Part shown: positions 6,690 to 59,191 of the stretch, piece by piece | How positions within the stretch are numbered: position 1 is the stretch's first letter | How the letters are laid out: every line of letters starts with the position of its first letter | DNA from: Penicillus capitatus | Taxonomy: Eukaryota > Plantae > Chlorophyta | Length of the DNA: 64,000 nucleotides | Direction: 5' to 3' | NCBI GenBank assembly: GCA_965649825.1 | Contig: OZ287717.1 | Coordinates: 137,201 to 201,200 of the forward strand | Notes under the pieces: generated by a model | What the model was told of the DNA's origin: nothing | Database searches by the model: none | Seen by the model: the letters and a program-made list of their open reading frames with translations, nothing else | Program-made: the position numbers and the translations under genes

Positions 6690-7568
6690 TTTCCGTCGTC
6701 GACCACGTTCCTCGACTTTCGATACGATGCGCGTGTGCAGTATCTGAAAACGGATACAGGTAGAATGACTTGAAACCCACACGCGACTAACTACTGCATC
6801 TGTCACATCAAATCGACGGCGCCTCCACAAACTCTTGATCGACCCCTTTCGCTTTCTTCGTCGTTATCCAAGACTACAAAGTGACAGTAAAGACAGAGAG
6901 ATATAAAACTCAGTTAGTTCTTCGCAAAATTGCACAATCATGCGCATTGCTTCCTTTTAACGCTCTCAAGGTAAGGAAATCGACGAGAAACCACAGATTC
7001 AGAAAGAATAACACATCATCACCTCGATCATATATATCTTCTCATCTTTTCTTCCACGACATCTCCTATCTATTCCATTGCTCCAGTTCAGCTACCTTGT
7101 CTAATGTCAGCACGCATCACCCCTTGCCTAAACAGAAGGATCAAACAGCGTTATCATAAAGGTATGAACTAACGACCGAAGGCACAAGACTCACTTAACA
7201 GCGCTTCGAGGTACAGCATGTCTCGCATTACTTACACAGACAGATACTCAACCCAAATTCCAAAGCAGCATCTCACCAACTAACCATCACAATCATCAAA
7301 AGAACACAATCTCGTGTCGTCAATGCAAACAAGGCACATCTGCTTGATCCAGAATACGTCTGTGTGTCCTAACGGTGTGCCCTCACGCAGCAGACGGTAG
7401 ATAGCGTTCCTATCCGAGTAAGCAGTACACGCACGTCCCTTCCGCGTGATGGGACGTGTTGAGTGGCGCTAACGCGTTGGATGATGGTAGGTGAGGTGAG
7501 TCAGTTTTTATTCAACGCGTCGTTTTCTGAGTCCGTTTCGCGCTTTCCTACCGAGTGCCGTTGTCAGT

Positions 7569-8739
7569 ATGTCCAACCCTATCCCTGCCGTCGGAAGTCG
7601 CATTAGTCTGATCTCCAGCGGAGACATCCGCTATGAAGGCGTTCTGTATTCCATTGACATGGTCGAATCCAAAATCGCTCTTCAGCAAGGCACGAACAGC
7701 GACTCCTACGCAACACGAGACACAACAGCGGTGTGCGTGCGTTAGTGAAGTCCTTCGGAACGGAGGGCCGCCGAGCGGATTCGAAAGTCCCACCGAGCGA
7801 CGAGGTCTACGAATACATCGTTTTCAAGGGTGCGTGCGTCTGAGCAGATGGCGAATCGGCGGTGACGGCTTTGTTCGATATGGCAGGGTCGGATATCAAA
7901 GAACTTAACGTTGTCGAGTATGCCCGACAACATGCACTCGACGATCCAGCCATTATCTCCGTCGTAAGCTCCGCCGCCTTCTCGTGCATATCACTGATTG
8001 GGTGAATGTATGGATAGGGAGCCGGACTTAATTTTGGTTCAGGTGTGTGCGTTTGTGCAGATGCCTCTTGAGCATCTGTGGTTGGGTGGTGCATGCAGGT
8101 GGACCAAGCGGTACCCCGAGTCGACGTGATGGAGGTGGTGGCGGTGGATATTGGCATGGAGGTGGCCGCTTTGGTGGTGGAGGTGGTGGCTACCGTGGTC
8201 GTCGTGGCGGATTTCGCGGCGGCTACAGAGGTGGCAGAGGTGGCTATCCAAGATACGATAATGGCTATCAAGGATACAACAGAGGTGGCGGCGGCGGCTA
8301 TCAAGACAGAGAAGTTGTGCCATCTGTGAAAGTGCCAGATGAAGATTTCGACTTTTCTGAAAACCTGGCAAAATTCAACAAAAGCGAATTGACTAGCAAA
8401 GCAGAAGAATCAGAGAACAAAGAAGCCGATGGAGCATCGAAGTATGCGAAAGACGAGTTTTTCGACATGATGTCTTGCGAAGCATTGGAGAAATTGAGTT
8501 TGGGAGGGAACACATTGGAACCGAGAAAGAGCTTCCAAGAGCAAAGAAAGCTGGACATGGAGACATTTGGAGGCCTGGCACGTGACTACCGTGGTCGAGG
8601 CAGAAACCGCTGGAACCAGAGAGGCCGTGGAAGAGGGCGCGGTGGATACAACATGGGTTACGGTGGCGGCGGTGGCGGCTACGGCAGAGATGGTTATGGC
8701 GGCGGTGGCGGCTACAGAGTACGTTCCTATGACTGGTGA
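7569..8739 (+). CDS. LSM14: LSM14/Scd6/DCP5 mRNA decapping activator
   Basis: LSm domain [45 protein letters not shown]; FDF ([14 protein letters not shown]), FFD (KDEFFD) and TFG (METFG) boxes; RGG tracts; 4 introns, first is GC-AG (7690-7745). Confidence 0.95.
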
Positions 8740-9617
8740 ACAGTATCTGAGAGTGAGATCACTCTTTCTTCTCTGGCGTAGTCTCGTTATTAGACAGTTC
8801 TTTCATGATAACAAAAGACTAAGGAACAGCACCAATGGATGTGGAGAGATAGCTATAAGAGTCCGTCGGTCTGGGATTGTCTTCAATGTCTTTTTGTGTG
8901 ATGTGCGTCATGGGTGATGTGACAGGCATCGTTCATTAGGTGATGGAGGTGCTACAACCTTACATTTGATGATCGTATCCATTTGTCTCGTTGGCTAGTC
9001 GACAAAAATTAAAAAAACAGGAACAACAACATTATCAGCATCAGCTTAAGGAAGCGTCTCTGTCAGATTCCCTCGCCAAACAAAAATGGCTCCTGTTCCT
9101 TAGTTCCATTGATTTTGTACGTGTTCTGCTGATTTTGCTTGCTCTCTATTGTTTCTGGGCCTTAAACATGATACTTGCTATTTGCTAATGTTACCGTTTC
9201 TGCGTTCTCTGTTCATATGACCGAAGACATCATGATGATTGATTCCCTGTTAGACTTCCCGATTGATGACGATTTGTGTGAGGTCGGATTGGATTGGATA
9301 AAATACGAACTAAGAAGATCACATCGACAACCAGAAGAAGAAAAAAAAGATGAGCATTAGAAGATGATGACATTCCAAGAGATGACGCTAAATTTGGCCC
9401 ATGCCGAAGTGTGTTCTCGAGTCATTGATTGAATTGTCATGAAGAATGATGCGCTGAGGACAAAAAAGAGAAGGGCGATTGTTGAGTATGATGCGACACC
9501 TGCATAAAACAAATGCTCAAAAGCGAAATAATTGATGTTGCGTTTAGGAATCATCTTTTTAATTTTTGACAGTCTGAATTGTTGTGCGTGTCTCTAACCC
9601 CACGACAACGCCTCACG

Positions 9618-12313
<2,696 letters not shown>

Positions 12314-12466: not shown

Positions 12467-13669
12467 CTATGTTGACTCCTCTGTTAAGCCTGGTCGCTTT
12501 CGCAGCACGTGTAGAGGTCGATCGAATCCGCCGACCCTCTCATCCAGCATCACCGTCTTGACCAACTCAAATCCAACGTCCTCCGTTAGATACGGCACAA
12601 AGGCGTCTGGATGGAATTGTATGTCGGAAAGGGTAAAGGGAACGGTGGACAGATCCTAAGACGTGCGTTTAGGTTAGACCACCATAGCCAGATGGGATGC
12701 TCGCCTGTTTCTGAACGGCCTTACGGTAAGATCGTATGGGCTGCGGTTCAAAGATCAGCAGACCCGTTTCCCTCAACACCTTCCAGAATTGATGGAAGAG
12801 ATGACGCATGCCTTCGTCTCCGTGATGAAAATGGATCCACTTTGAGACGCTGAGACAGGTTAGTACATCACAGCCGCCATGTAGATGATGTGACAGCTCC
12901 ATGAAATCGCCCTGTACAAAGCGCGTCTTCTTCAGCCGCCGCACCGTCTCGCGTTTTCCATTGCGCTTGTAGGTTCGTATCAGCTCCGATCGCATCTGCT
13001 GCGCCTGACCGTGTAGCGACGCATCGATCTCTACTCCAGTCATACTGCCAGGTGAGAAATGCAGAACGATGCCCAGTGGCACGATGCCGATGTGACATCC
13101 CACATCTAACACATCCTTCTCACAGAACCACTCCTTCTCCAAGACCTACACCCATAGAAACGCCATCGCTGCCGCCGCCAGCCCGAGGTCCCCCAACTTG
13201 AAGGCGTGGCTCATCGAATGTCGGGTCCGAGAGACGGTAGCTGTAATAGCGTGGGTAGTTTCCGTAGACATAGGCCACTCTCTGTCGCTTCCCTGCACGA
13301 CTCTCCACTTCATCTCGATGCTGACGGTAGACTAGAGAAGCCAACATATGGTAAGGACTTGATGTGACAGGCATCACCTTGGAGAAACAGCTGTGCCCAA
13401 TGGGACATGTCCCCTCGATAAGGTAAGGCCACTTCCTCAGGGGCATCAGAGCCGTCCTCTTCACTCGACGTCACATCAAGGCGGCGGCGACCCACTCCGC
13501 GCCGCCGGCGTTTGCTAGGCACCTCCACCGAAGGCGTTCTCACCGTCTCTTCCGCAGACGTCTTTCTTTCGCTCGCATCCAATCGGGCGAGGCATTCGCC
13601 GATCTGCCGATCGATATCCTGACGTAAGGCTCGGAGTTGCTGCACGGTCTTGGCGATGGCGTCGTCCAT
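12467..13669 (-). CDS. MEPCE: Bin3/MEPCE-type RNA methyltransferase
   Basis: YGNYPRYYSYR, VLDVGC, CLSVSKWIHFHHGDEG, FEPQPIRSY, GFDRPL motifs; 3 introns, 12656-12704 is GC-AG. Confidence 0.9.
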
Positions 13670-13758
13670 CCCGAAGCTTCGAGATAGTCTATCAGCCGAG
13701 CTGTCACATCAAACAGCCATTCCTTCGCGACCCTCAGCCTATCCACGTCCTTGCACCG

Positions 13759-14676
13759 ATGGCCAACGAGGCGACCAAAGTCTACCTCTACGTCTACGAC
13801 TTATCCAACGGCCTAGCCGCCAGTCTGTCTCCCTCGCTGCTCGGCAAGAAGGTATGGCATGCAAAAACGTGTGACCGCCTTCGAGCTCACGGGTGATGAT
13901 GTGACGTTTGGGATAGATCGACGGCATCTGGCACACGTCCATCGTCGTGCATCGAACAGAGTTTTACTTTGGAGGCGGCATCTCTTCAGCCCCTGTCGGC
14001 ACAACGGCCTTTGGTCGTCCTGTTAAAATTCTCGAACTCGGGTCACACTTTTCAGCCGCCAATGTCACACTTTTGATATGTGTGAGAATAGGGAGACATA
14101 TGTACCGGTGGATGTCATTCACGATCTTATAGAAGATTTGCGTCATCGATTTTCCGAATGCTCTTACAATCTTCTCAGCAACAACTGCAACAATTTCTCA
14201 GACGAATTGGCCAAACTGCTCTTGGGAAAGGGCATTCCGGTATCCCCCTTTGAATGCGCCGATGTGCTCGAACATCGTTGGATGCAGGATCACATCGTCA
14301 AGCTTCCAGATGAAGTGATGTCCACGCCCTTCGGCCAAATGATCCGACCGATGCTGGCCGGACTGGAAACCCAACTTGGATCAATGAACGAAACGGCGCC
14401 ACAGAAAAGCGCGTCGGCGCCGCCGCAACAACCCAGTACTTCTGCGCCGCCGCCGCCGCCACGTGTCTCCCAAGTACATCCACCCAGTCCATAATGTACT
14501 GTGACGGACGCATATAGGATGAAGTGGAAAACGTGATTCGTCGTGAATTTGCCGCTCTGGTGGCAGAAGGCAGCGTCACACCGAACCAGGCAGCGGTCAT
14601 GGCATTGGAGAAAGTGCGTGAAATGTATGGCAGTAAAGGATCTGCTGACAGCGGCGGCGATAAGAGCCAAGCGTAG
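13759..14676 (+). CDS. DESI1: DeSI/PPPDE desumoylating isopeptidase
   Basis: VYLYVYDLSNG, GIWHTSIVV (catalytic His), YNLLSNNCNNFS (catalytic Cys). The last exon after intron ~14473-14518 gives the plant-type tail IRREFAALVAEG..AAVMALEKV..YG, then TAG 14674-14676. Confidence 0.9.
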
Positions 14677-16702: not shown

Positions 16703-19700
16703 TTAAGATGAGTAGATCTTGATGCCGCGTTCGTAGGTATTCCAACGACTGTGCTGCTGTGGCTTTCGATTGGGTTTGGTGTCTTCGTGCTGCAAGGCAA
16801 TGAAAGATCCATTGTCGCCAAAGTACTTGCCATTGCTCCAAGCAGCGGAGAGTCCTCTAGGAAACTTGGAGATGACTTCGTCGTCGTCGCTCAGGTAATC
16901 CAGCGGCTGCATCTGCCGTGGGTGATAGGCAAACTTCCATTGCTCGAATTCGTCGTCCGGGATCTCCAGTTTCGCTTGAATACGTTTCTTGATCTCTCGC
17001 AGCGTTTCGCCTTTCTTCACGCGGATCCACAGAGGATCGCCGAAGATGGTCATCGTATTGTCGTCCGGTTTGCAATGACAGCAGTGCACCATATATTCGT
17101 TCGATTTCAAATTCTGTTCATCTTCTGGCACGACTTCAGCTCGATAGGTCCAGTAAGACTCATACAGCTGCTCCAGCGAGGCCTCACGGTCCAGTACCTA
17201 AGCACACAACCGTCGATCACAGGATGTGATGTGACAGGTGTCGATCACACTTTGAAAATTTTCGAGGAGAGGATCTCCATGACTCGGAAGTCGGAATTGG
17301 CGTAGTCATCGCCCAGCTCCTGTTTTAACTGCTCGATCAGATCGCCGATCGTTTTCTCTCGCGGTAGTCGAATCATGTGCTCGGACTGCAGTTCAGATTT
17401 GAGGTTGTGAAAACAGATCCTCATGCATTTCATCTTTTCCAGTGTGGGAAGCTGCATGTCCAGGATCTCATAGTAGAGGATGTTCGTGTACTGACGGGAG
17501 TGGAGAATCATGGCGTCCAGACTGTCGATGCCGTTGTACTTGATGGGACTTCTGTGCGGCAACTGTGCGTAGACATTGTGCTGCGTCAGACGGATCTTCT
17601 TGGGATCGTCCATATCCAGATGCTTGGCCAGTTCGGTCGTCACCTGCTCGTAGCTCATCGTCTTCAGCAGCTCCAACTTGAAGCCATCGTCCTGTCATGA
17701 CATGCGTGATGTGACAGATGTGTGACATGGAGAGATAACCTTTGGATTCTCAAGCGGTCTGAAATTCACCACTTTGCTGTTTTGAATGAACTCCAGGAAG
17801 GACTTGACGGTTGGATAGGGACAGACCTGCTCCGTCGCTTGGGCCTCGGCCACGCGCTCCTGGACAATGATGATATCGCCACGGACAAACTGACACTGTC
17901 ACGGCAAAAGAGTGAGACGCTGTTATGTATAAGGGGGTCGATATCTCACTCTTTCTGCGGTCTGCGCAGGCTGCAGCTCGGCACAGGTGACACTGGGATT
18001 GAACTTCACCTCCTCAACGCCAATCACATCCGCATCCTGCGCCAGCCCTGCCAGCTTCTTCGCCTTGTCGAGAATTGTCCGAATCTGCATCGTCTTTTCG
18101 ACGAAGAGGTGTCCAACGTACGCAAGCTTTCTCAGCTTCGGATCGTAATGCTTGACAAAGATGAGCAATTCGGACTGCTGCAGGGGACGCAAGACGTCAC
18201 CAATGTCCGGCGTCTCCAAGAAGAGCTTAACCGTCATCAAAGCGTTCTTCTCAGAAGCGGGCGGCAGGTTCCTTTCTTTGAAGGCTTTGAGATCGAGGAC
18301 GGTCTTGAGTTCAACGGATCCTGTTTCTAAAGGCTTTTCAATTCTCGTGGTCCCGTTTTGACGCTGCGTCCATAACCAGAAGCGCTGGAGATGCTTGGCA
18401 ATGCCAAAGTCTCGACTGACCATCTCCTTGAACTCTTCAAAAAGCGTCTTCTTGTGCACTCGGTAGTGCTGGACACCGTCAAAATTCGCCAAATCAAAAT
18501 AATAGCTCTCCCCCAGCTGCTCCGCAAAATGCTTCTCGCATGCCAGCTTGATCACCACGTACAGATGCGCCTCCTGCTTCTCCTTCTGTCGCTTCTCCTT
18601 CTCCGTCTGCTCCGCCTGCCCATACCACTCACCCTCCATCAGCACAGGCATCACGTCATCTCCCTTACTTCAAGTCTTTTGCGAATGGGCTCTGAGATGT
18701 CTTCCTTGCCGGCTTCGCACATGAACCGATCCCAATCCGACATCCGAATGTACACCAGCATGTATGCCGTCGACTGCTTCGGATACTTCACGCCTCCTGC
18801 GAAATTCGTCGTGATGGGCTTGTCTTCGTCACCTGCGCCCAGCTGATCACACACGGTGAGAAGGCAGGGGATGGCTCGACCGAATTGCTCGGTGATCGCT
18901 CGGCTCTCGGTCTCTTCTTTGACGAGCTCATCATCAAACTTGTACCATTTGTCGTCCGATTTGATAAAGGCATAGTAATGCCCTCCGTGTGGTCCTCCAC
19001 TGTGCACCAGCACACTGTGCAATCGATACTTGTTGACGACGGTCTTATCAGAGGTCTCGGAAAGAAAAGCACGATCGTTATAATCGAGGTCCAGTTCGTC
19101 ATAGAACTCGTAATGTGCATTGATCTGTTCGCCACAGACAGATCGTCACTCCTTCAGCATCGACGGCGCACACACATACTTTGACCATAAGATTGCGTAC
19201 GGGGTCATAATCAAATCGCTTCAGATGCAACTGCAGAACAGGAGGGAAGCTCTCGAACCGTGCGTAGCGTTTGGCATCCTGACAGGAGACATCGATCTCA
19301 CACATTTGACCAAGACATGGCGGCGATGCAAAGAGTGAGATCTGACCTGAAGTCCGTGCTTCTCTGCGTTGTACTTGTTCGGTCCTTCCATCCTCTCTTC
19401 TGCACAGAATCTCTCCAGGGATTCGTAGATGTTCTTGCAGCCCAACACATCCAACTGGATCTCCATATACGGCTGCTTGCGCGATGAGGTGTAGGGCACG
19501 TTTAGACACTCCACGTAGTTTGAGTAATGCCCGACGAAGAGTTCGGGAATGGCATTCTCCACTTTGGTCCCCTGCAGCGCGCGTGATGTGACAGAAGAGT
19601 GAGATATGTGTGATCGACCTTCATCTTCTCCTCGAGCTTCTCACACAAGATCGCTTGCATCTCTTGAATGTCGTGCTGCAAGAAAGCATCGTACGTTCCC

Positions 19701-25801: not shown

Positions 25802-26454
25802 ATGCTTGATTTGATGATGAAGATGATCATGTCGCGAAAAAGTTCTTTCGATGATGCAAAGGTCCGAGGGAAGCACGCGACGTCCGGTTCCACGACGACA
25901 GCGATTACGCCTCGCCACAAGAGCGAGACACAGCAGCAGGAGCCCGTCCGCCGCCGACGTCTTTCTGGATCGACTTCGGTGTCGGAACCGAAATCGACAC
26001 GAGACATCTCGACGATCGCTGCCGCTAAAGAGACGTCTCAACCGTCGAACGTATCGCGCGGATCGGCGACTGTTGCGGACGTCACGCAACTGACGGAGAT
26101 ACTGGAGCGGATTGTGCCTTTGCTGAAAACGGGCGCCTATGACACGACCGTGCTCTCACCGACGGCCAAGACCCTCATCGAAACCCTGACGAAACAACAC
26201 CTAGACGAAGACGTAAGCCAGCGCGCTCCCCTGACGTCACATCAAAGCAAGCGCGTGCGTTGCAGGTCGTGGTGCCGCTGTGCTGGATTGTGGCCGCGAT
26301 TCAGGACAGTCGAGAGAAGCGTCCACCACATGCGATGCACCGTCCGCCTTTCCCTGTTGTCTTTTTCCTGATTCAGTTGTTCATGGTCTTGTTCAATTTT
26401 GTCATGCTCGTTGCCATCATTTCGTCATTCTTTCCAACTTCATCCATGCTTTGA
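25802..26454 (+). CDS. Uncharacterised probable tail-anchored protein
   Basis: Ser/Thr-rich ORF, intron ~26212-26265, C-terminal hydrophobic stretch VVFFLIQLFMVLFNFVMLVAIISSFF. Start uncertain. Confidence 0.55.
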
Positions 26455-43129: not shown

Positions 43130-43173
43130 CTCGTGCAAAATGCTTGATGTGACAGGCAGGTCCAGTCGATCAG

Positions 43174-44210: not shown

Positions 44211-44224
44211 GATTGCATAAGTCG

Positions 44225-44535
44225 ATGCAGGTCGACAGCCTTCCGTCCAAAGCAAACGAAGACATGTGTGCGTATCTCTTCGCCTCTTCGCTGCGATGCA
44301 CGTACCCGTTCGCGTTGTTATGTACGACGTCGGTGTGGGTCAGGTCTGGAACGCTATCCAGAAGACAAAGAGAAATGCCAGGAGCAGTTCGATGCCTATA
44401 AAGCCTGTCGCAAGGCGGAGGTCGGTACGGTGTTTGTCGTCGATCTGACGCACGGCGTCGGTCTCGCAGGTTCTGACGCGACGCGAGCGGCGCTTGGAGA
44501 AGGCGAAAGCGATGGAGAGTCGGCGGCGGCAATGA
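44225..44535 (+). CDS. COX23: Twin-Cx9C mitochondrial intermembrane protein, COX23/CHCHD7-like
   Basis: Spliced product C-AYLFASSLR-C-LERYPEDKEK-C-QEQFDAYKA-C; the spacing is restored by GC-AG intron 44298-44343. Confidence 0.75.
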
Positions 44536-44540
44536 GACCA

Positions 44541-45731
44541 TCACTCGGTATCTGATCCTTCCTTGCGGGTCATCTCGTTGGGCAAACTGAAAGTGGATGC
44601 TTTTATGTCCATGCGGAACCGTTTTCTGATTGGAGGCTCTTGGCCGAAGAGCCGGAGGCCATGGGATGGGGTGTGTGGCGGCGGCGGTCGCTTTTTCGTA
44701 TGCCATCGATAGAAACGCGCTGCGGTGCATTGCTGCTGCTCCCAGTCGAAACGAAAACGTCCGTCGCGGATGGCATCGGAGAGATCTTGGATGAAAGACC
44801 AACGCTCCATACCCTGACGTCTTTTCGGCCAGCGAGTGTTCTTTCGCCGTGATGTGACAGGCGCCGGGCCGCGAAACGCCCACTGCGTCTTGAGAAACTG
44901 AAGAACGGTATCGATGGGATCGTGCCTTGACCCATCGCCTCGATCCTCCACATAGAGATGCGCACGACGGGGCAGGGGGAGGATCTCGGGATGGTGATAG
45001 AATCGCCGAATGGATGACGGTACCCAGTGATCGCCACACTTCTGACTCCACATGTGTGTCCACTCCCGCCGCCATGCCTCACGAAAACGATTCCTCTCCT
45101 TGCGCCGCCGACCAGACGACATCCACACCTTCCTTCGAAAAACGCCGTAGGGGCGATGCGCTTCGCTCAGGCCATCGCCAAACGGCAGCGTTCGGAATTC
45201 GACACGAGGAGATGGCGGCTGGCGATCCGCCTCTGCCTCGGGCATGCTTGGAAGCGACGGGGAAGATGTCATGTCATCGTGGTCTTCCATCTCGGCCAGT
45301 CTCTGATCCACGTACTCAGCAAAGATCTCGATCGGCACGCCGTCGATCGTCGTCTCTTGTGGCGGCGCTGGCGGCGCCGGCAGCGATAGGCGTTCGGAAA
45401 TGGAGCTGTGCAGGATCTCGTCTGGACCAAACTCCTTCTTGCGGACTTGGACGCGAATGGAACGTCGTCGAAAGGCACCGACGTTCAGAAAAGCAGATCG
45501 CCATCTCTTGGAACTCGGATCCGGCTCGACCGCACGGCGTTTGTGCTCGTGGCCTAGGATGGACCCCAGTACACCACTGTCCTTTACAAACTCGCCACGT
45601 TCGATGCGTTCCAACTCAACCCGGACGATCCGTTCGTGCGGTCGCGGTTTCCAGGAATGGAGGCACGCCACGAGGGACGTAAGGCGCGTTGGATTGAGAC
45701 GGCAGGACAGGAGAAGGCGGTGCATGGACAC
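44541..45731 (-). CDS. Intronless 396-aa orphan ORF
   Basis: Long ORF filling the gap between COX23 and KCBP-A; Arg/Trp-rich; no motif recognised. Confidence 0.45.
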   Translation of the reverse strand: MSMHRLLLSCRLNPTRLTSLVACLHSWKPRPHERIVRVELERIERGEFVKDSGVLGSILGHEHKRRAVEPDPSSKRWRSAFLNVGAFRRRSIRVQVRKKEFGPDEILHSSISERLSLPAPPAPPQETTIDGVPIEIFAEYVDQRLAEMEDHDDMTSSPSLPSMPEAEADRQPPSPRVEFRTLPFGDGLSEAHRPYGVFRRKVWMSSGRRRKERNRFREAWRREWTHMWSQKCGDHWVPSSIRRFYHHPEILPLPRRAHLYVEDRGDGSRHDPIDTVLQFLKTQWAFRGPAPVTSRRKNTRWPKRRQGMERWSFIQDLSDAIRDGRFRFDWEQQQCTAARFYRWHTKKRPPPPHTPSHGLRLFGQEPPIRKRFRMDIKASTFSLPNEMTRKEGSDTE

Positions 45732-46007
45732 GTCAACGTCTGGATATGCGCTGCATTTTGGCAGAAGTTAACCTCCGTGGTATTATTGTCATCCACCTCT
45801 TGATATCTTTCTTCGCAACGCTATTGTTCCTTCGATACGCTGTCGACTACCGTTCGCGTGTTTCTGCCGCATTCCCGTGACTCTCTCCGAACGCAAGTGC
45901 TTGACGCGGAGACGCAGAAGGAACGGTTATCTGCCGCAGCAGTCGCAACAACAGCGATTTTATCGCACGACTTCGCTAACACGACTTCTTTCCACGACAA
46001 ACGTCCC

Positions 46008-49000
46008 ATGGATTATACACCCGTAAGTTCCGCCCACCGCCCAGGCGACTTCAGCGGCAAACCCGACGGTGACGTGTTAGGGTGAAGATGTACCGGCTGT
46101 GGGTGTCCGGGACTCTTTGCCAGCGCTGAACAGCGTCGAATTCAAGTTTCAAGTACGCCTGCCTTTGCGTGCAGTCGTTCGTCAGAGGCCCTCCAACGGC
46201 ATCGCTGCTTAGATTGATGAACATGTCAAAGTGAATGGCGCTACTGAGAAGAGCGAATCCCGTCGTTCCTCCGTTTTGGACGTCGCCGAAGACCCACCCT
46301 TTGCAGACGCCGAAGGCGCCCTGCTCGATGAGCTGCTCAAATTCTCCGAAGTCCGTCACCATACGCATCCACCCGCCGCCAGACCCTTCATGTGTCTGCA
46401 GAAGCCACTGCCGTCCAGTTTGCTGAAGTTGGACTCCAACCGGACGCAGGACGCTTTGAAGATGCACGAGTACATCTGTACCTATATGGGCTTCCGTCCA
46501 GCGTCGCTCGAAGCCGGACAGCTGGTCGAAACGGCATCGCGTCTCATCAAGACGTGTGCCAAGCATCCGGATCTGAAGAACGAACTCTACATGCAGCTGA
46601 TCAAACAGAGCCGAAGTGTCCCACTCGAGGAGTACAGAGATCGCGTCTGGGAACTCTGGATCGTGGCGGCGTCCGTCTTCGATCCGGCCAAGGTGAACAG
46701 ACCCCAAGGCCCGCTCAGGGTCTGCACTCCTGTCGCGTCTCCGTAGGAGTACATCGCCGTCATCTCCGAGTACATCCACCAGGTGATGCAGGAGTCCCAC
46801 GACTCGGCCCGCATGAAGGAGCTCGTGTCTCGCGTCTGGGCAACATTCAAGCGAACAACACGCGCCGGACCGAGACAGGAGGTGACGTCGCCGGCCCGCT
46901 CGCGCTCGTGCGACATGAATCTTCCTTAGGCGCTGGGTCTGGACGAGATCGAGGCACTGCTGTTGAACAAGAAGTTGACGACGAGAGTTCAGTTTCTGGA
47001 CGGACGCGAGTGCCGCTTCGATTACCACACGACATCGACGGTCCAGGAGGCGATCGAGAGCATCGCCGAGACGATCAGCCTCGCCAACTACGCGACGTTT
47101 TCGCTCTACGAGATAAAGCCATCCGAGGCGGTGGAGAACGGAGAGCTCGTGGACACGCACAAACATCTCGAGGAGAATCTGTACATCGCCGACATCCTTT
47201 CGCAGAAGGAGGACAAGGAAGGAACTTACTTTCTATTCAAGAAACGCATGTTCAGGTGAAACGGCCCCTATCTCGATCGAAGGCCTCGGGAATGTGTGTC
47301 CGTCCGGCAGGGAACAAGACGAACACATCACGGAGCCGATTTTTCTGTCGCTGTCCTATATGCAAGCGCAGCATGACTTTCTGAAAGGAAACTATCCAGT
47401 GGTCCGGGACGACGCGGCGCAGATGTGCGCCCTGCAGATCATCGTCGCCGAGGGCGCCGATTTGAAGAAGACGGATCCGCGTTTCATGAAAGCCGCCGAG
47501 AAATTCACGACCTCTCAGGTGCCACCCGGTCCTCGGGGACCAGAGAGATGAATGACATGGCCGTGCAGATTCTGATGTCGCGCAAGCGTCAGCAATGGCA
47601 CCAGGACGTCTACCACAGATACAACGCCTTCAGCAAGCTGACGAAGGAGGGAGGAAAACTGCAGTTCCTGAGAATCATCCACAGTCTGCCCTACGGTGCG
47701 TGCCGTTCCTCTGCATCGCGGCGCCGCCATCTGATGCCTGCCTGCCCTTTAGGAAACTCGACGTTCTTTCCCGTGCGACGGAACGCCGATCCGATCGGTC
47801 TGTTGCCATCCAAAGTGATCCTGGGCATCAACAAACGCGGCGTGCATTTCTTCCGACCGGTCCCCAAGGAGTACCTTCACTCGGCAGAGCTGCGCGACAT
47901 CATGCAGTTTGGATCCAGCAACAACGCCATCTTCATCAAGATGAAGGTCGCCGGCGTTCTGCACGTGTTCCAGTTCGAGACGAACCAGGGCGAAGAGATC
48001 TGCATGTCCCTCCAGACGCACATCAGCGATCTGATGATGAAGCGATTCGCCAAGGTACTCACCTCCTTTACATACAGCAATGATGTGACGTTTGTGTTGC
48101 CTGTGGTGTGCTAGACTCGGAAGATGTCCGAGACGCAGCGTCGTTCGGGCAGGGATGGTTTGCCGGACGCCAATTTCGGCGAGAAATACGAGCACCACAT
48201 TCGACAGATGCATCAAAGACTACAGGAGCACCAGACGCACATCTCGAAACTCCAACAGATACAGCAAGCGTCCGAAGCCGAGCTCGATTCCATTCTGAAC
48301 GAACTCGACGAAACCCGACAGAAGCGTCGCGCGGTGGATTCCGAGAAGAACACGCTGCAGAGCAACCTGCTACAGATGCGTCGAGATATGACAGCCCTCA
48401 GCCGTTCGCTCTCCGATCTGAGAGGCGCCCTCGTGGAAGAAGAGATCGCCAAGATGACAGAGATCAACAAACTGACGGAGGCAGTGGACTCGGCCAAAGC
48501 CCAGAGCCTGGAGGAGGAACTCAAGGCAAAACAAGAGGCCATTGCTGCCAGCGAACAGCGATGCGCCGAACTGGAGCGTCAGTTGGCCGACACCGTCGCC
48601 AGTTACCAGCAACTCACCAGCGATTTGTCACATCTAGAGGAAACGCGGTCCGAAGAGGTCCAGCAACTCAAACACGAGCTCGCCGACGTCAAAGAGAACG
48701 TCCATACTCTGGAGCAACGTCAGGAGGCGGAGCTGAACGATCTGGTCGAGCGTGTGGCCAACATCACCGCGATGTACAACGCAGACTTGGCCGAAATGGA
48801 ACAGGTACACGAGGATCAACTCGAAGTGCAAGAACTCCTGGACCTGAGAGCTGACATTCAACGTCGCGAGAGCAGTCACGCCGTCGTGATCGAAGGCCAG
48901 GCAAAGAGAATCGACTACCTGGATTCCGAGTACAAAAAAGAACAGATCATGCGCAAGCGCTACTTTAACCAGATTGAAGATATGAAGGGGAAGATTCGCG

Positions 49001-50930: not shown

Positions 50931-53900
50931 ATGGCCGAAGAGGTAACCGTGTTGCCCCCGTCGCCCGCTGCCGCTCGAGCCATTCACCTGCTGGCTGTCA
51001 ACAACCGAACCCTTACCCGCCCTATGGCCGCTGTGTAGGACGCGGTATCCGTTTCGACGTATGCGTCGAACAAGAATCTCACTGGGCTCGGCAGCGTCGC
51101 CGGCAATTTCCAGGTAATATCCGCCGTCGCAGCTCCGACGCCGGCCAGCCCGATGGACCGTTGACGGGTGCGATGTGTAGGTGGATGGCTTGCCACGACC
51201 GACGAGCAAGTGCCCCGAAATCGTGAACAAGAACGTTCAGGAGTCGGAAGATCCGCCTTTCAATGAACAGGACGACATGAGCCTCGAAGACCTCCTCGTC
51301 TTTTCACCTGTCACCCATCAGCACCTATCGACGATCTCTCCTGAGCCGTGTCTGCCACGCAGGAAATGATAACGACGAGTATCCTCCGAATGGATGGGGA
51401 GAACAATGAGAAAGCCGTTTTGATGTTTAACGACGTTTTGAAGTATATGTCGGAATCTGACGACCCTGCAGAGAAGGTGCCGCAGAAAGACGTCGCTGGC
51501 AGGATCATAGAGGACTGCCTCCGCGCCGCCATCCTCAAAGACGAGCTCTATATGCAGCTCATGAAGCAGACGCGCAACAATCCCAATCTCACATCGAAGA
51601 TGCGCCTCTGGGAGCTCTGGCTCGTTCTCGCTGCATCCGCGCCGCCATCCAAGGTGCGCCGCCAGCTGTCACATCGAGGGGCTGCCACGATCTGTGCTGT
51701 CTGCAGGACTATGTGTCCCTCCTGTCCGAATTCATTCACAGCGTCATGCGTGACGAGTCCGAGGACGAAACGGTGCACGGTCTCGTGGAACGTGTGTGGA
51801 ACACGTTCAAGCGCTCGACGAAGGCGGGACAGAGGAAAGCCGCGCTGCAGTCTGCCGATATCGAGGCGCTGTGGGAGAACAAGAAACTGGTCACGCGTGT
51901 CTCGTTCTTGGACGGCAACGCGGCGACGCTGGACTATGAAGTCATGACGACTGTCCAGGAAGCTGTGGAGTTGCTGGCCAAGACCATCGAACTGGAAAAC
52001 TTCAACAGTTTCACCATCTATAAACTTTACACACCGCGACAAGATGAGGACAGCCACGAGGCCGTCCAAGAGCAGCACGTGCTGCTCGATGAAAACAGAT
52101 ACATCGCGGACATTCTGGCAGAGGCCAAGGCCGAAGGAATTGATGTGACGTTGCTGTTCAAGAAAAAGATGTTTAGAGAACAGGACGAGCACATCACGGA
52201 GCCCGCATTCGTTAACCTATCCTACGCTCAGGCTCAGCACGACTTTCTCCAGGGGAATTATCCGGTAGTGAAGGATGACGCCTCCCAGATGTGCGCCTTG
52301 CAGATCTTCGCTGCGCAAGGACCGGGTCTCGACGAAAGAAGCGACGTCTTTCTGCGAGAGCTCGATAAAAATCTCACCAAACAGGTGGGTACCCCTACAG
52401 GCGGCGGCGCCGCCACTGAGCGCCGCCACTACTGGCGTCTGTTCTAGGTGAGAATGACACGTCCAGGGGAGGAATGGCGTCGGGATGTGTATCGCAGATA
52501 TGTCGCCTTGAGCAAACTGACACAGGAACATGCGAAGCTTCAGTTCTTGAGGATTCTCAGAAGTCTGCCCTACGGCAATTCGGTTTTCTTTTCGGTCAAA
52601 CGAACGGAGGACCCCATCGGTCTGCTGCCGTCCAAGCTGATATTGGGTATCAATAAGAGAGGTGTCCACTTCTTTCGACCGGTCCCCAAGGAGTACCTTC
52701 ACTCGGCCGAGCTGCGCGACATCATGCAGTTTGGATCTAGCAGCCACGCTATCTTCTTTAAGATGCGTGTCGCCGGCGTTCTACACATCTTTCAGTTCGA
52801 GACGCGACAGGGAGACGATATCTGTATGGCCTTGCAGACACATATTACCGATATTATGATGAAGCGCTATGCCAAGGCCAAGGAGCACAGGCGACCGGCC
52901 AATTCTACTGGACTGGCGCAGGCGAATTTCGGTCCGAAATACGACCAGCACTTGAAGAAGATGCAGAAGGATGTCGAAGAGGCGTCGATGCGAATTGAAG
53001 AACTGGAGAAGGAGGAGAAAGAGGCGACGTATAAAGTACAGGAGATGCGTACGCAGCTCGAAGGCATCCGAACCAATCTCACCAGCTACGAGTCGCAGAA
53101 GATGGATCTGCAGTCCGAAATCTCTGCCGCTCGCAAAGCCATCGGCGCCGCCAAAGAAGAGCTCCACGATATTCAAGCCGTCCGTTGCCTTTACGTCTGA
53201 CGATTCTCCCAACCGTCGCTGTCTGTTGACAGGAACTCGCCGCCATCGAGACGCTAAAGGCATCTGAGGTCACCGAAGTCGCCGTCCCGAATGCCGACAG
53301 TGTGCAAGTCCAGCAGCTACAGGTCAACTACGAACAACTACAGGCAGAACTGAAAGAAGCCCAAGAAAAGTGCGATCGCGTTCTCACTCTTTTTTGTCGC
53401 TATCTTATGGATGTCACTCTTTAGGGAAGACGCCGTTTCCAATCAGCTAGATGAGATCGAAGAGCAGAGGAGCAATGTTAGCAAGCGTTTGGGAGAGCTC
53501 GAGGCGTTGAAGGGAACGGAGGTCCAGGATCTCAAAGCAGAGTTAGAAGATATCAACAGCAACTTGAAGAATCGCATCAAAGCTAAGGACGGCGAAGTGA
53601 ACGAGCTCCAGGAGAAGCTCGCCAATATGACAGCTATGTATAACGAAGACCTGGCCGAGATGGCTCAGATGAAAGAGGACCAGACGGAACTGGTGGAGCT
53701 TAGACAGATGCGTCAGGACGTCGAGCGTATGGAGAAGGAAACGGCGTCCGTCATTGAGGGTCAAAGGAATAGAATCGATTACTTAGAGAAGCAGTACAAG
53801 GAAGAACAAGTTATGCGCAAGAGGCACGTCTCAGCCGCCGGCGGCGGCGGACGGTGTGATGGTGTCTGTGTAGGTACTTTAATCAGATGGAGGATATGAA

Positions 53901-55099: not shown

Positions 55100-55656
55100 A
55101 AATTTGCGGCGGCGGCGGCGGCGGCCGTTTTCTGCCGAATCTATGCCCTTCATGACTGTGTATTGTCTGCCAATAATAAGTGCTCGTGTTTTCGTCTATA
55201 ACGGTTAAAAGTTCACTTTTTTGCGGCGCTGACATTGTGGGAAATGCAGATTTGGAGAGGAGGTCATCTCGCCGCCAATCCCCACAGCGTCCCCATAAAA
55301 CAATGAAAATCTCTATGACCACAACCACCGCTATCTGATGATCCATTGTTTGTGCTATTATTCTTCATTCCATAGAGATGGTGGATAGAACACACGATAT
55401 TGCATTTCTGTCCGTCTACTATCGATTGCCCTCCCCTCTGTTGCGATTCTTGTCGCCACGCCTGTGGATGGTGGACATACCGATCAACAACCTTATGATG
55501 ATGTGTCGCTCAATATCCACGCCATGAGATCGTCACAGTCATGAATGTGGTGTCTGTCAAACTCGTTGTGTCCCTGAAACGACGTCCCGGATCACATCGC
55601 GGAGATAACGCTAGTACTTTACAATCAAATGTCACATCGTCCAAAGTGTGAGATGC

Positions 55657-56169
55657 TTAAGCAGAGCCGAGCGCTTTTTCGGCATGGTAGACCACATAGA
55701 GAAAGCCATCCTCATCTTTCTGCTTCTCGTACACCGACATCATCAAATCACCTGTCACATCACAGCTCACACTTTGTGCCTTGGTCAAGAGTGAGACCCG
55801 TGGCGGGCAGGATGCCGTTGATGAAGATGAAGAGCGTTTTTTCGTGCTCCAGTTTGATTCTCTTGCGGATAACGTAGACAAACTGACCGACGGTCAAGTC
55901 ACCCGGCACCAGATACTTCTTCTTGTCAATCCCTGGCAACGAACACTTGCCATACCTCTCCACAATCACCTAAAGGCGCCCCGCGCGTCAAACGGCGGCG
56001 CAAAACGGCGGCGCGGACCGGTATGCGCAAGGGATGCTTCTCCTTTATCTTTTCTGCCTCTGCCCGTCGCGTATCTATTGGACACAGCGCATCGAGGACG
56101 TGACGCGAGCGGCGGATGGTCGCTACCGAACGCGTGTTCCTGTTTGAATGCACTGACTGGTTCTTTCAT
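55657..56169 (-). CDS. ATG8: Autophagy protein ATG8
   Basis: [71 protein letters not shown]; 3 introns. Confidence 0.96.
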
Positions 56170-56605
56170 CGTTTGTCGCCTTCGCGTAATCCGTACGATA
56201 AAGGGGCACCGTCTGCAGCTCTACCCTCCTGTCACATCATCTGCCCTGTCAGTGACGCGACGTCGTGTGGCACCTCGGGCGGTGTGTTTAGCATCGGATC
56301 TTTCAGAAGAGGACGGTTGGAAAACGATGTGAGGCATCAGCAAAGGTAACCGGCCACAGTCATCCCTTGTCATCGCCCTTTCGCTGAAAATCATCCATAA
56401 CGCAGAAAAACGTCTTCCCTGTCACCGACGCAAAACCGACGCCCGTCACCAAAAGCGACGCGCGCAGCATACGGTCCTGTCTCGAAGGCAGGTGTCGATG
56501 TGACGTGCGTTGCGCGACGTTTCTACTTAGGCGACGTGAGACGAAGGGCCTGACGGTTGCGTGACCTCTCCACGACGTCACTGTACTTAAGACGTGTCGA
56601 CATCC

Positions 56606-58975
56606 ATGTCACGACCCGACGACCCCTTCTCGCTGAATCTCGCCGCACGTGAGGCTCTCGGTCGTTTTCTGAGTCCTTCGGTTTATTGGATGCCTGGACA
56701 GGCCAGTTGGGCGGCTCTTCATCTCACACTTTTAACTGTGAGACATTTTTGCGCATCTCTATGTCACGCGCCCGATCTGTTGCGCAGATGGCCACACCGA
56801 TGCGGCATCGACATCCTTCTACACGGCAGCCTCGTCGATCAACGGTAGGCGCGCTCATGTATGACCTGTCACATCATCGAGATGCACCGCAGGAGATAGA
56901 GAAGACGTCCGCAGACGTTCCACACGTTGGGGTAGCGCTAGATCATGCCCTTTATTTTATCCTGAAAAATATCTCGCAGGGAGTGGACGGCAGAACCACC
57001 TGCAAAACATCTTTACGTTAAAAGAAGGAGATCTATTTGCTCAGAGGTACGGGTTTGACGCTTACGGTTAAAGACGTCATTGGATGCTTCGTTAGGTATC
57101 GCATACAGGGACGCACACCGAAGAAGCCACTGCAGTTCTACGCGACTGCCCTGCGCAACGGCGCCAGCGTTGGTCTCAAATTCTACCCCTGGCCATACGA
57201 CGGCCTCTCAAACTGCATCGCCAAATACGAACGCGCCAAGCACAATGATCTCGTCTGCAGGTCGCCCATCCGCCCGCGACGCAAAGATCACACGGTATCG
57301 ATGCTCAGGATGATCGAGTATGTGCCAGAAGACGAGCGATTTCCACCTTGCGTCGTCTGCGAGGACGGCGATTTTGCGTTGAGTGTCCTGATCGGGTCGT
57401 CAAGTCTGCCACCCGTCTTCCGAAAGATCCTTGTGCAAAACGTACGGCAGATAACGCAGAGATCTTCCAAAGGGCGTCCATCGAATGCGTATGGCGTTTA
57501 GGTTTTCAAGGCGCTCCACAAGCTTCACGCGCTGAAGATCGTCCACGGCAGTCTCCGACCGGAGAAACTGATGTGCTTCCTGCCGGACTTCACTCTCAAG
57601 ATCGCCGATTTCGACACCGCGCGCTTCAGTGGCGAAGAGGCCGTGCCAGAATCTCCATCAACGCTCGAGGGCCTACTGCCCTACGCATCGCCGGAGATCG
57701 TGCAATCGGCAGAGTTCAGGCAGAAGCTCAGATACCACGCCTCGTGCGATATCTGGACAGCTGGCATCCTCGCCTGCGAGCTCCTCACAGGTCGGCCGGT
57801 CGGTGGCGGCGCAGAACGTGATCGCGTTTCTGTAGGAAGCGGCTTCTACGGTGCATCGCCGAGTATGGAGTACATGACCGATGTCGCCGCCGACAGAGAG
57901 CCCCTTCCCGAGATCGTCTGCAACGACAGACACATTCGGGCTTTTCTCCAGACGTTGCTTCAAATGGATCCCTCTCAGCGACCCGCCGCCACCCTCGCTC
58001 TCGAAGACGACGTCTTTCACACATTGGACGTCACATCACCCGACCCCGTCGAAATGCAAGAGGCAGGCACACCACGGATATCCACTTAGCTGATAACGCT
58101 GTGCAGGTCATCCAGCGACTCTCCGGAATCGAGAGGGCTTTTCATATGCAGCTCGGCGGAACGGTGGCCTCCCATCTGAGCCCCAGCGTCTCGTTGGAAT
58201 GGTTTGATCCGTCGACCAAAGCGGATGAGCCGTTTGAGCAACGACAGGCGAGCGAAGCGCTGTCAGGCAGCTTCGTAGAGTCCGACGAAAAACGCGTGTT
58301 CCATTTCTTGCGGATCGGCGAGAGCTGCCGTCTGAGGATTGTCGTACAGTACGATCCCAATGTCCGCATTCGCGTGCACGAAGTCACCTCCGTTCGTCTC
58401 CAGACGCCAGACGGAGAGCCTGTCGAACTGGAGAGGCGTGTGCTGTCGAATGACGCCTCGACGTGCGTGACGGTGGCGCTTGTGGATCCATCCAGCATTC
58501 CTTCGCAGAGACTCCGCGACGTCTGTCCCCTCACCGGCACGTGCGACGCGCGTTACGTCCGTCTGGATCTCCGTATCGAATTCGTCGCCTGTGGCGATTC
58601 GGATCAGACGCTCGAAGCCAATCGCGTGCTCTACTGTAAAATGGTCCCGCCGAAGAGTCGACTGCGTTACCGCCGATTTGTCAGGGCATGTCGGGAAAGG
58701 TGGAAGCGCATGCCAGAGTGGATAAAGAAGACGACGCAAGGTATTGGATGCCGCATGAAGACCAGCGTGCTGGTGGTCTGGTGATGCACCGAAGGCATGG
58801 CACACTTCTCTCCACATCTCGCTCATATATAAGCCTCCACCGCTGCAATTTTTCCTGTGGGTCAGTAGGTGCGTTCGGCTCCTCAGCAATGGCGATTCTC
58901 ACGGAGGCTGCTGGTCATGGGAGAAGGGTGTTTTGGTCTGAGCACCCGTCGACTGGGGACCTGCTTTGGAAGTGA
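56606..58975 (+). CDS. Pseudokinase + DUF3694-like domain, family member 1
   Basis: LKFY, PPCVVCEDGDF, HGSLRPEK (catalytic Asp absent), KIADFD, YASPE, CDIWTAGILACELLTG, DPSQRPAA; then the C-terminal beta domain. Both ends approximate. Confidence 0.8.
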
Positions 58976-59191
58976 CAGGATCGCTGTGTCCGAAAACATT
59001 ACCGAAACGCTTTGTAATTCAATGTTTCCTGAAGAGGGATCGCATGGGAGGTGCTTTGCTGTGCAGTCGCCGGCGCCTGTCACATCAAATATCCGCCATG
59101 ATTTCAGAACGGTCAGCGACGATGACGACCGCGCAGGCCTCGACGCCGCGGTTCATCCCACAGCTCGCAAGGTCGATACGGACGAATAGAG

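Follow-up and report, generated by a model that had tools for sequence, protein, structure and literature searches.

The window analysed here, i.e. the whole stretch of 64 kb, comes from a compact, green-alga-like genome with introns of 46-65 nt and divergent start codons down to 89 nt apart. It contains an LSM14-like gene, CDC5, a divergent Bin3/PPPDE pair, USP7, two KCBP-like kinesins, ATG8 (the spliced product gives a Pfam ATG8 match over positions 2-104 of 104) and a kinase-like gene, together with a minus-strand ORF at 44544-45767 that is 40 % identical to relative C over 408 amino acids. The segment 28260-31091 is an inverted duplicate of 46130-48958 (98 % identical). Rfam at gathering score and a tRNA search yielded no matches in the window.

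Distributed over this DNA in both orientations is a sharply defined word of 10-11 bases, (T)GATGTGAC(AG/GT). All 30 exact copies of GATGTGAC/GTCACATC reported by the first-pass annotation were recovered, with positions differing by 0-2 nt. They are given below together with their state in the syntenic relative B, which is 83 % identical:

6802..6809, minus strand: divergent intergenic DNA, about 440 nt upstream of the minus-strand ORF 3818-6361, sense; full form TGATGTGACAG; kept in B (L001 19930), where the flanks have diverged, with indels
8916..8923, plus strand: 3' flank of the LSM14-like gene (plus strand), sense; lost in B through one substitution, TGATGTGGC
10553..10560, plus strand: CDC5 intron, sense, 6 nt before the 3' splice AG; kept in B, where the 3' splice AG directly follows the motif
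12887..12894, plus strand: Bin3 codons (L-S-H-H, minus strand), antisense; kept in B
13089..13096, plus strand: Bin3 codons (C-H-I of the LDVGCHIG methyltransferase motif), antisense; kept in B
13361..13368, plus strand: 46-nt Bin3 intron, antisense, 8 nt from the 5' splice site; kept in B, while the remaining intron has indels
13470..13477, minus strand: Bin3 codons (D-V-T), sense; kept in B
13703..13710, minus strand: 89-nt spacer between the divergent start codons of Bin3 (ATG at 13669) and PPPDE (ATG at 13759); kept in B
13898..13905, plus strand: PPPDE intron 13852-13916, sense, 11 nt before the 3' splice AG; kept in B
17228..17235, plus strand: USP7 intron 17198-17250 (minus-strand gene), antisense; 9-mer kept in B, the next two bases changed from AG to GT
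17708..17715, plus strand: USP7 intron 17692-17739, antisense
19585..19592, plus strand: USP7 intron 19572-19618, antisense
26236..26243, minus strand: unannotated and non-coding, some 250 nt beyond the stop codon of a dehydrogenase-like ORF on the minus strand; kept in B (L001 188), with a 9-nt indel alongside
28584..28591, plus strand: codons of a truncated inverted KCBP-like copy; duplicate of 48627
29129..29136, minus strand: intron of the truncated inverted KCBP-like copy, sense; duplicate of 48082
32613..32620, minus strand: ORF-poor stretch of lower GC
32902..32909, minus strand: ORF-poor stretch of lower GC
43146..43153, plus strand: adjoining the low end of the minus-strand ORFs 43177-44339
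44851..44858, plus strand: codons of the minus-strand ORF 44544-45767, antisense
48082..48089, plus strand: KCBP-like kinesin 1, intron from 48055, sense, 25 nt before the nearest 3' AG
48627..48634, minus strand: KCBP-like kinesin 1, coiled-coil codons, antisense
51668..51675, minus strand: KCBP-like kinesin 2, intron 51654-51706, antisense, 13 nt from the 5' splice site
52142..52149, plus strand: KCBP-like kinesin 2, codons (D-V-T), sense
55631..55638, minus strand: 3' UTR, about 18 nt after the ATG8 stop codon, sense
55754..55761, minus strand: end of ATG8 intron 55752-55797, sense; the following AG is the 3' splice site
56231..56238, minus strand: 62-69 nt upstream of the ATG8 start codon (56169), sense
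56497..56504, plus strand: between ATG8 and the kinase-like gene
56868..56875, minus strand: between ATG8 and the kinase-like gene
58030..58037, minus strand: antisense, at the start of an intron (58030-58106) predicted in the kinase-like gene (plus strand); the assignment follows a crude gene model, in which GTCACATC would supply the 5' splice GT
59079..59086, minus strand: downstream of the kinase-like gene

Specificity for this word is all-or-none: TGATGTGAC is present in 23 exact copies compared to 0-5 for any single one-mismatch variant, and one-mismatch variants of the word show no excess in the window. TGAT-G-TGAC is invariant in 23 copies and continues with AG or, in a third, with GT. 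Its usual form, TGATGTGAC(AG), accounts for 14 exact 11-mers; the base after AG is G or C in 12 of the 15 AG-type copies. The flanks of the copies share no similarity, and the information is confined to positions -1 to +9. Because 28584/48627 and 29129/48082 sit in the inverted duplication and represent one event, 28 of the 30 copies are independent. The density of exact copies in the window is 0.44/kb, about one per 2 kb, and composition-aware nulls predict 3-5.5 copies instead of the 30 observed. Dinucleotide shuffles averaged 3.9 copies and never exceeded 9; Markov models of orders 1 to 5 gave expectations of 3.7, 3.4, 4.1, 5.5 and 11.7 (Poisson p 9e-18 to 5e-6), and order 5 with the motif masked from training gave 2.9 (p 2e-20). 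The excess persists in synonymous-codon shuffles as well. Loss of the enrichment under a fourth- to fifth-order Markov or codon-shuffle null had been named as a refutation; no such loss occurred, but the 15-fold over-representation claimed initially shrinks to about 7-10-fold once base composition is considered. The second refuting condition, that the motif is a fragment of a repeat family, found no support: self-BLAST returned only the inverted duplication and the kinesin paralogy, and no longer repeat carries the word.

The positional profile against introns revealed 3.2 copies/kb in introns, about 60-fold over expectation, vs 0.17/kb in coding sequence (0.053/kb expected). In coding DNA, 4 copies vs 0.9 expected represent a marginal enrichment (P = 0.01, the count including one duplicate). 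Eleven of the 30 copies were placed in introns (10 of the 28 unique ones), roughly matching the 13 or so counted before, and their occurrence there in either orientation was confirmed. The remainder, assigned earlier to UTR/intergenic DNA and codons, is distributed in much that way, with 7 copies in codons, 5 near gene ends and 7 in unannotated non-coding DNA. The motif was found in 7 of 42 homology-bracketed introns. With respect to transcription, 11 copies are sense and 10 antisense, both present in confirmed introns, and the unique intronic copies divide into 4 sense and 6 antisense. Three start codons have a copy 34-69 nt upstream, six copies are located within about 1.1 kb around the Bin3/PPPDE pair (P = 0.003), and genes with a copy make up over half of those in the window.

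Comparison with relatives, suggested earlier as a check, showed that 12 of 13 sites are kept in B. At non-coding sites the 9-mer is 98.6 % identical vs 68 % for the flanks (Fisher p 1.3e-9), and other enriched words show no special conservation between the window and B. Antisense intronic copies are conserved as well as sense ones, and new copies in B were created by small indels or by multi-base changes that occur in clusters. Of the more distant relatives, E has the motif, with copies in codons of poorly conserved parts of Dcp1, and so does F, in which two full copies are spaced 48 nt apart upstream of Dcp1; relatives C and D lack it. USP7 introns 4, 9, 10 and 11, which include the motif-bearing ones of the window, occur at the same positions in C and are motif-free there. 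The 5' splice sites are degenerate (GTNNNN) in the window species and B, and motif-free C has canonical GTAAG/GTGAA donors and ACTAAC-like words. Taken together, the results establish the excess, sharpness, strand symmetry, location classes, clustering, island-like conservation and patchy presence of the word in relatives.

A role in RNA, as an intronic splicing enhancer or 3' splice-site element offsetting the weak splice signals of this lineage, would fit the 60-fold intronic excess, the arrangement in all sense intronic copies, where the motif follows a branch-site-like CTCAC and precedes the 3' splice AG, the use of the motif's own AG as acceptor in ATG8 intron 3 and in CDC5 of B, and the contrast between the degenerate donors of the window species and B and the canonical ones of C. 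However, six of the ten unique intronic copies are antisense and equally well conserved, just 7 of 42 introns carry the motif, conserved copies also reside in promoters, a 3' UTR and codons, and a branch point 3 nt from the acceptor would be unworkable. Strand symmetry and occurrence outside introns argue against a splicing signal, which we regard as improbable. The earlier suggestion of a DNA-level rather than an RNA signal is supported by the 11:10 strand symmetry, the presence in all location classes and the island-like conservation. The specific candidates offered with it, a nucleosome organiser, a modification target or a recombination mark, gained no support. If a short mobile element (introner, MITE) had created or invaded the introns and left the motif as a remnant or terminal repeat, both orientations would also be expected, and the intronic motif faces the nearer intron edge (the 3' end if sense, the 5' half if antisense). 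Introners are transposon-derived introns of Micromonas, Aureococcus and others (PMC9860276), and they resemble the present case in that a short sequence is common to many introns, in either orientation, in marine or freshwater algae (PMC9860276). In contrast to introners, which are similar along the whole intron and recently gained, self-comparison revealed nothing in common beyond 10-11 bases, and the introns are ancestral: since the motif-bearing USP7 introns exist motif-free in C, the motif is not an introner. There are neither paired inverted copies nor target-site duplications, and a 9-mer island conserved amid decaying flanks is unlike a neutral relic. The word is independent of any longer repeat and of intron gain, and a mobile origin appears very improbable. 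The chance of a compositional or codon-usage artefact is negligible: the order-6 Markov expectation of 24.6 nears the observed count, but this model was trained on the motif's own 7-mers, whereas the excess survives orders 1-5, motif-masked training and both types of shuffles, and the motif is conserved between species.

A further alternative is a genome signature word under molecular drive, maintained not by gene regulation but because a system for DNA repair, recombination, modification or recognition would target it. Bacterial Chi and the DNA-uptake sequences (USS/DUS) are of this kind, and their machinery is known (RecBCD, competence receptors). Like the window word, they are exact 8-12-mers at about 1 per 1-5 kb, occur in both orientations, are tolerated in codons and are lineage-specific yet conserved among close relatives, although the comparison is an analogy only. 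All-or-none specificity, both orientations, a spacing of about 2 kb, copies inside codons (including the poorly conserved Dcp1 parts in E), patchiness among close relatives and the way new copies arise in B are in agreement with this idea. On the other hand, no Chi- or uptake-type signature system is known in eukaryotes, which counts against it. Moreover, the coding enrichment is marginal and includes a duplicate, and the tight clusters around particular promoters and the strong depletion in exons relative to introns fit regulatory modules better. We consider a signature word unlikely.

Our favoured reading, held with about even confidence, is that T-GATGTGAC-(AG or GT) may be a recognition site on duplex DNA for a sequence-specific DNA-binding protein. 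Scatter in both orientations combined with intactness between related species most likely indicates the docking site of such a protein. The word would then act as an orientation-independent cis-regulatory or architectural element. As the genome is compact, the sites would occupy the available non-coding DNA (introns, promoters, UTRs), with an occasional one in codons that tolerate it, and would accumulate in several copies at particular loci (Bin3/PPPDE, ATG8).

A possible, more speculative extension is that a pair of TALE-class homeodomain proteins (in the green lineage, KNOX/BELL) reads the word, one of them perhaps contacting TGAT and the other TGAC(AG). The proposal is based on a two-core architecture common to the ZYRE of Chlamydomonas and the animal DECA motif, and these resemblances lend weight to the remark in the first-pass annotation that the word contains TGACA, the TALE core. 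In Chlamydomonas reinhardtii, ZYRE (zygotic response element, YGACAYGAC) is the predicted site of the GSP1/GSM1 (BELL/KNOX) TALE heterodimer; it has two YGAY cores 5 bp apart without strand bias, depends on GSP1, is enriched in promoters, 5' UTRs and introns, forms clusters and functions from an intron (PMC4889651). The window word, also from the green lineage, has direct-repeat YGAY cores 5 bp apart (TGAT-G-TGAC vs YGAC-A-YGAC), fits ZYRE at 7 of 9 positions and differs by one mismatch from the functional intronic variant TGACGTGAC. It likewise lacks strand bias, prefers introns and putative promoters and 5' UTRs over coding sequence and forms multi-copy clusters at some loci. In contrast to ZYRE, its first core always ends in T, its spacer is always G and it continues with AG or GT, so it does not match the consensus YGACAYGAC. 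There are no copies of TGACGTGAC in the window, and TGACATGAC occurs 5 times vs 0.74 expected. The word is also denser (0.44/kb exact vs 0.21/kb in a degenerate scan of Chlamydomonas) and marks over half of the window genes vs a few per cent.

In animals, DECA (TGATTGACAG) is a target of PBX:PREP/MEIS TALE dimers, and the conserved sites that PBX:PREP occupies number in the thousands (PMC6023610); TGACAG is the Prep/Meis half-site, HEXA (PMC3711040). A TGAT half-site followed by TGACAG within a sharp motif of about 10 bp is common to these elements and the window word (PMC6023610; PMC3711040; 10.1101/706473), as is deep conservation, and many of the thousands of occupied DECA sites lie near broadly expressed genes. 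However, DECA itself, with directly adjacent half-sites, has 0 copies in the window; the window word has one extra base between the half-sites (TGAT-G-TGACAG), a third of its copies end in GT instead of AG, and the lineage is a different one. No PBC-class proteins are known from plants or algae. Plant KNOX/BELL sites include TGACAG(G/C)T for KN1 and the potato BEL5/POTH1 target with tandem TTGAC cores. They share with the window word the TGAC core, the continuation TGACAG(G/C) seen in 12 of 15 AG-type copies and tandem cores 5 bp apart, but are unlike it in detail.

Several points count against the binding-site reading and its TALE extension. A copy is present in more than half of the window genes, far above what a zygote-specific regulon such as that of ZYRE would lead one to expect. 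One-mismatch variants form no cloud whatsoever around the word, which is unusual for a site read by a transcription factor. The enriched word is neither the exact ZYRE nor the exact DECA sequence, and a single TALE half-site leaves the AG/GT alternation after GAC unexplained. Relatives C and D are motif-free, and in them any such factor must have changed or lost its targets.

It is also conceivable, albeit unlikely, that the word is no gene-specific enhancer but serves an abundant chromosomal factor of general function as its site, or else is targeted by a sequence-directed DNA transaction. In the case of such a transaction (repair, recombination or modification), molecular drive would keep about one exact copy per 2 kb; individual sites are conserved, which speaks against a recombination hotspot that erodes itself. 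If true, the word would be a eukaryotic counterpart of the signature sequences of bacteria, with gains and losses between algae that are closely related.

Thirty exact copies of GATGTGAC/GTCACATC occur in the window, and their positions in the first-pass annotation were borne out with an offset of 0-2 nt. Dinucleotide-preserving shuffles yielded 3.9 ± 1.9 copies (maximum 9), and Markov models of orders 1 to 5 predicted 3.7, 3.4, 4.1, 5.5 and 11.7. Since the order-5 expectation was reduced to 2.9 once the motif was masked from the training counts, the enrichment does not vanish under a high-order null, but with a 7-10-fold excess it is smaller than the about 15-fold over-representation claimed at first. 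A compositional artefact as the source of this excess is essentially excluded. Self-comparison of the window revealed an inverted duplication (28260-31091 and 46130-48958, 98.3% identity), which makes two pairs of copies one event each and leaves 28 independent copies, and no dispersed repeat family carrying the word; the motif is thus not just a fragment of such a family.

The word itself is sharply delimited. T-GATGTGAC is followed by AG in 15 copies and by GT in eight, and exact TGATGTGAC and TGATGTGACAG were counted 23 and 14 times, respectively. One-mismatch variants occur 0-5 times each, which is the chance level, and within ±80 nt of the copies no informative position was detected beyond -1 to +9. 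The lack of both a mismatch cloud and outside information indicates that the element is asymmetric and 10-11 bp long, stands alone and is all-or-none. A literature search with the exact 8-mer and the 11-mers returned only primers and miRNAs.

The window is eukaryotic DNA and encodes Dcp1, USP7, CDC5, LSM14, Bin3/MePCE, a PPPDE peptidase, ATG8 (with TGTAA at its 3' end), a KH protein and MyTH4-FERM (KCBP-like) kinesins; among named proteins, the best matches come from green algae and plants (Bryopsis, Nannochloris, Picochlorum). Protein homology to a relative (C) served to bracket introns, together with alignment of the window species (A) to a closer relative (B) and hand-built ATG8, Bin3 and PPPDE models checked against Pfam; our own HMM-like gene finder was too crude, missing several genes, and was used for site 58030 only.

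Location of the 30 copies
Short introns (46-65 nt): 11 copies (10 unique)
Codons (D-V-T twice, C-H-I, L-S-H-H and others): 7 copies (6 unique)
Non-annotated DNA: 7 copies
Near gene ends: 5 copies, as follows
Between the divergent Bin3 and PPPDE genes, 34-41 nt before the Bin3 ATG and 49-56 nt from that of PPPDE
62-69 nt before the ATG8 start codon
In the upstream region of ORF 3818-6361, about 440 nt away
About 18 nt past the ATG8 stop
LSM14 3' flank

Pfam scans of the ORFs in the non-annotated stretches gave no match, which leaves these seven copies without a feature class. The 42 well-bracketed introns (2.18 kb) contain seven copies, corresponding to 3.2 per kb in comparison to 0.053 per kb expected (p = 5e-11). 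In 23.5 kb of coding sequence we counted four copies, one of them a duplicate, against 0.9 under synonymous-codon shuffles (P = 0.01). Copies are also clustered: six fall within 1.1 kb at Bin3/PPPDE (P = 0.003) and five within 1.25 kb at ATG8. Within the clusters, the few sites are 109-272 nt apart, a nucleosome-scale spacing.

Several features of the locus were recorded alongside. The divergent start codons of Bin3/MePCE and PPPDE are only 89 nt apart (13669-13759), which implies tiny 5' UTRs or head-to-head overlapping transcripts. The 2.8-kb inverted duplication holds the MyTH4/FERM/coiled-coil half of a KCBP-like kinesin, and its 28-31 kb copy resembles a truncated, inverted version of the gene. 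Two further KCBP-like genes form a tandem (46-50 and 51-55 kb); C likewise has a tandem pair (L006). Two ORF-poor stretches (31000-34000 and 41000-42000, GC lowered to 43-45%) lack recognisable genes, and tandem repeats are found at 35645-35725 (42 nt, 1.9 copies) and 59874-59962 (30 nt, 2.6 copies).

Relative to the transcript of the host gene, the classified unique copies comprise 11 in sense and 10 in antisense orientation. The four sense intronic copies (CDC5, PPPDE, KCBP1, ATG8) lie close to the 3' end of the intron, and the six antisense ones (three copies in USP7, single ones in Bin3 and KCBP2, and the copy at 58030, whose intron in a kinase-like gene is predicted by the crude model) in its 5' half or middle. 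In ATG8 intron 3, the AG directly after the word is the acceptor, as the spliced product matches Pfam ATG8 over its full length. Intron 23338-23384 terminates on its 3' side in the one-mismatch variant TGATGGGACAG (23374-23384, sense), which is placed like this exact copy.

Two further words mark the introns of this region. TCTCAC[T/A]CTTT and its complements AAAG[A/T]GTGAGAT are 7-8-fold over-represented in the window; the sense form resembles an extended branch site (CTCAC plus ACTT), and in several short introns both orientations form an inverted repeat that joins the 5' splice-site and branch regions. CGCCGCCA(T)/GCGCCGCC occurs 48 times window-wide versus 7.4 expected. About 13 of the 42 introns contain it, in either orientation; some occurrences are GC-rich palindromes, and a few lie 2-8 nt upstream of the GATGTGAC word.

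Examples of the two additional words
TCTCAC[T/A]CTTT/AAAG[A/T]GTGAGAT: 17896-17949 (-), 19280-19346 (-), 55752-55797 (-), 10541, 53384, 54098
Introns with CGCCGCCA(T)/GCGCCGCC: 19899-19945, 49789-46, 52385-52447, 53828-53886, 55970-56018

Between the window species and B, neither is specially conserved (4 of 8 for the former; 7 of 16, the background level, for the latter). Introns of these two species are 46-65 nt long and GC-rich with highly degenerate donors (GTCGAT, GTTATC, GTCAGA, GTGCGC and others); the orthologous introns of C (L003 7040-9440) are about 40 nt long and AT-rich, with canonical GTAA/GTGA donors and ACTAAC-like words.

Relatives were retrieved via Dcp1 and kinesin homologues, and the comparison covered 64 kb of the window genome and 21.5 kb of B.

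Relatives of the window species, with Dcp1 identity
B (L001): 87%, syntenic, nucleotide identity 83%
D (L008, L009): 67-69%
E (L010): 59%
C (L003, L006): 58%, syntenic, GC 42%
F (L011): 52%

Along the 21 kb of A/B alignment, B keeps an orthologous copy for 12 of the 13 copies of the window; one copy is specific to the window and four to B. Eight non-coding sites could be aligned cleanly; there, identity is 98.6% for the 9-mer in comparison to 68% in the 20 nt on each side (Fisher p = 1.3e-9). The word is frequently abutted by indels, and at one site AG has switched to GT after an intact 9-mer. Other over-represented window words (AAGAGTGA, CGCCGCCA) are conserved at background level only, so that the signal is specific to the GATGTGAC word. 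Beyond B, E carries three copies in 2.5 kb and F a pair of full TGATGTGACAGCT copies upstream of Dcp1, separated by 48 nt; the 9-mer is absent from 42 kb of C and from 5.4 kb of D covering a region with six copies in both the window and B. Overall, the GATGTGAC word is real, sharply defined and selectively maintained.

A public record of the same contig (L002) differs from window 5024-26272 by scattered changes and one indel (21199 of 21248 bases in matching blocks, first difference at L002 2712), which points to a second haplotype or to another version of the assembly. Screening metagenomes for paired copies mainly yielded unrelated satellites and brought up no relative of the window; owing to ascertainment it is not usable as evidence of breadth. 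One lake-sample set (JGI Ga0315899/Ga0315905/Ga0315908) contains many contigs with short tandem arrays of 3-20 units (period 20-23) that share a constant core (GA)TGATGTGACA with spacers varying between loci, some with both orientations on one contig. They are eukaryote-like (L017 has a BRE1-like ORF of 828 aa), and BLAST found no similarity between them and the window.

Contigs with lake-sample arrays
L014, L016, L017, L032, L041, L049, L051, L052, L062, L070, L073, L075, L077, L080

Several familiar elements could be rejected. Although the palindromic core TGT[G/C]ACA resembles the branch-point consensus yUnAy on either strand, some copies lie 3 nt from the acceptor and others outside introns, which rules out a branch point as a general explanation. 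A C/D-box snoRNA, a small-RNA promoter (Ruby-motif-like) or a fixed-distance partner would require a second conserved position, which is missing within ±80 nt, and known RNAs were dismissed as the window has no Rfam or tRNA hits. Purely by reasoning, we set aside an E-box/M-box (TCATGTGAC), which is broken by the invariant G at position 2, and bZIP sites (CRE, CARE, XBP1), as a bZIP palindrome would need the half-sites in another orientation. An introner or longer repeat is contradicted by similarity between copies ending at 10-11 bases and by the motif-bearing USP7 introns, which have motif-free counterparts with canonical GTAAG donors at the same positions in C; relics of mobile elements are so improbable as to be essentially excluded.

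Recognition on duplex DNA by a putative sequence-specific protein is the best-supported reading, which we hold with about even confidence because of the strand symmetry, the tolerance of any non-coding context, the occasional use of codons, the homotypic clustering at particular loci and the island-like purifying selection. In a compact genome, such sites would occupy the only non-coding DNA on offer. A role as splicing enhancer would be in line with the striking intron excess and with degenerate donors in the window lineage as opposed to canonical signals in the motif-free C, but it fails on the orientation of the copies and on those outside introns and is improbable. As a general splicing signal the word is rejected outright: it is found in only a sixth of the introns, 6 of the 10 unique intronic copies are antisense and equally conserved, and others are extra-intronic. 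Somewhat less unlikely, though still doubtful, is that molecular drive keeps the word or that a repair, recombination or modification system reads it. All-or-none specificity, copies within poorly conserved Dcp1 codons of E, the patchy phylogeny and new B copies created by clustered multi-base changes would agree with this, whereas no eukaryotic machinery of this kind is known and locus-specific clustering fits it less well.

With regard to the preferred protein site, the word is most likely a protein-binding cis-element with a two-core architecture like that of the Chlamydomonas zygotic response element (ZYRE) and the animal DECA decamer. It reads TGAT-G-TGAC(AG), two YGAY cores 5 bp apart, as in ZYRE (YGACAYGAC), and differs by one base from the intronic ZYRE variant TGACGTGAC. 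ZYRE has no preferred strand, is over-represented in promoters, 5' UTRs and introns, acts from an intron, is clustered and requires the BELL-class TALE protein GSP1 (PMC4889651). DECA (TGATTGACAG) is bound by PBX:PREP dimers at thousands of conserved sites, and TGACAG is the Prep/Meis half-site (PMC6023610; PMC3711040; 10.1101/706473). The ZYRE consensus word TGACATGAC occurs five times (23564, 33026, 41426, 45268, 49074) versus 0.74 expected, at least twice in coding sequence. Three points speak against membership: the enriched word of the window is neither exact ZYRE nor exact DECA, its density is far above the needs of a zygote-specific regulon, and the AG/GT alternation is unexplained. For these reasons, we describe the word as working like a TALE composite site and do not file it as a demonstrated member; a TALE-type factor as its reader is more speculative, and the unusual density and exactness leave room for a more novel reading.

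If a KNOX/BELL-type pair reads the site, a TALE composite element would be in use at a much higher density than the zygote-specific ZYRE, across most genes and within the tiny introns of an uncultured alga, and would offer a natural system for following how the specificity of TALE heterodimers and the size of their regulons evolve in the green lineage. If another factor or process reads it, the exactness, density and patchy phylogeny would indicate something undescribed in eukaryotes. On either reading, the 11-mer (TGATGTGACAG, TGATGTGACGT) is ready-made for DAP-seq or EMSA, and the word is a marker that tells apart otherwise similar metagenome-assembled algal genomes.
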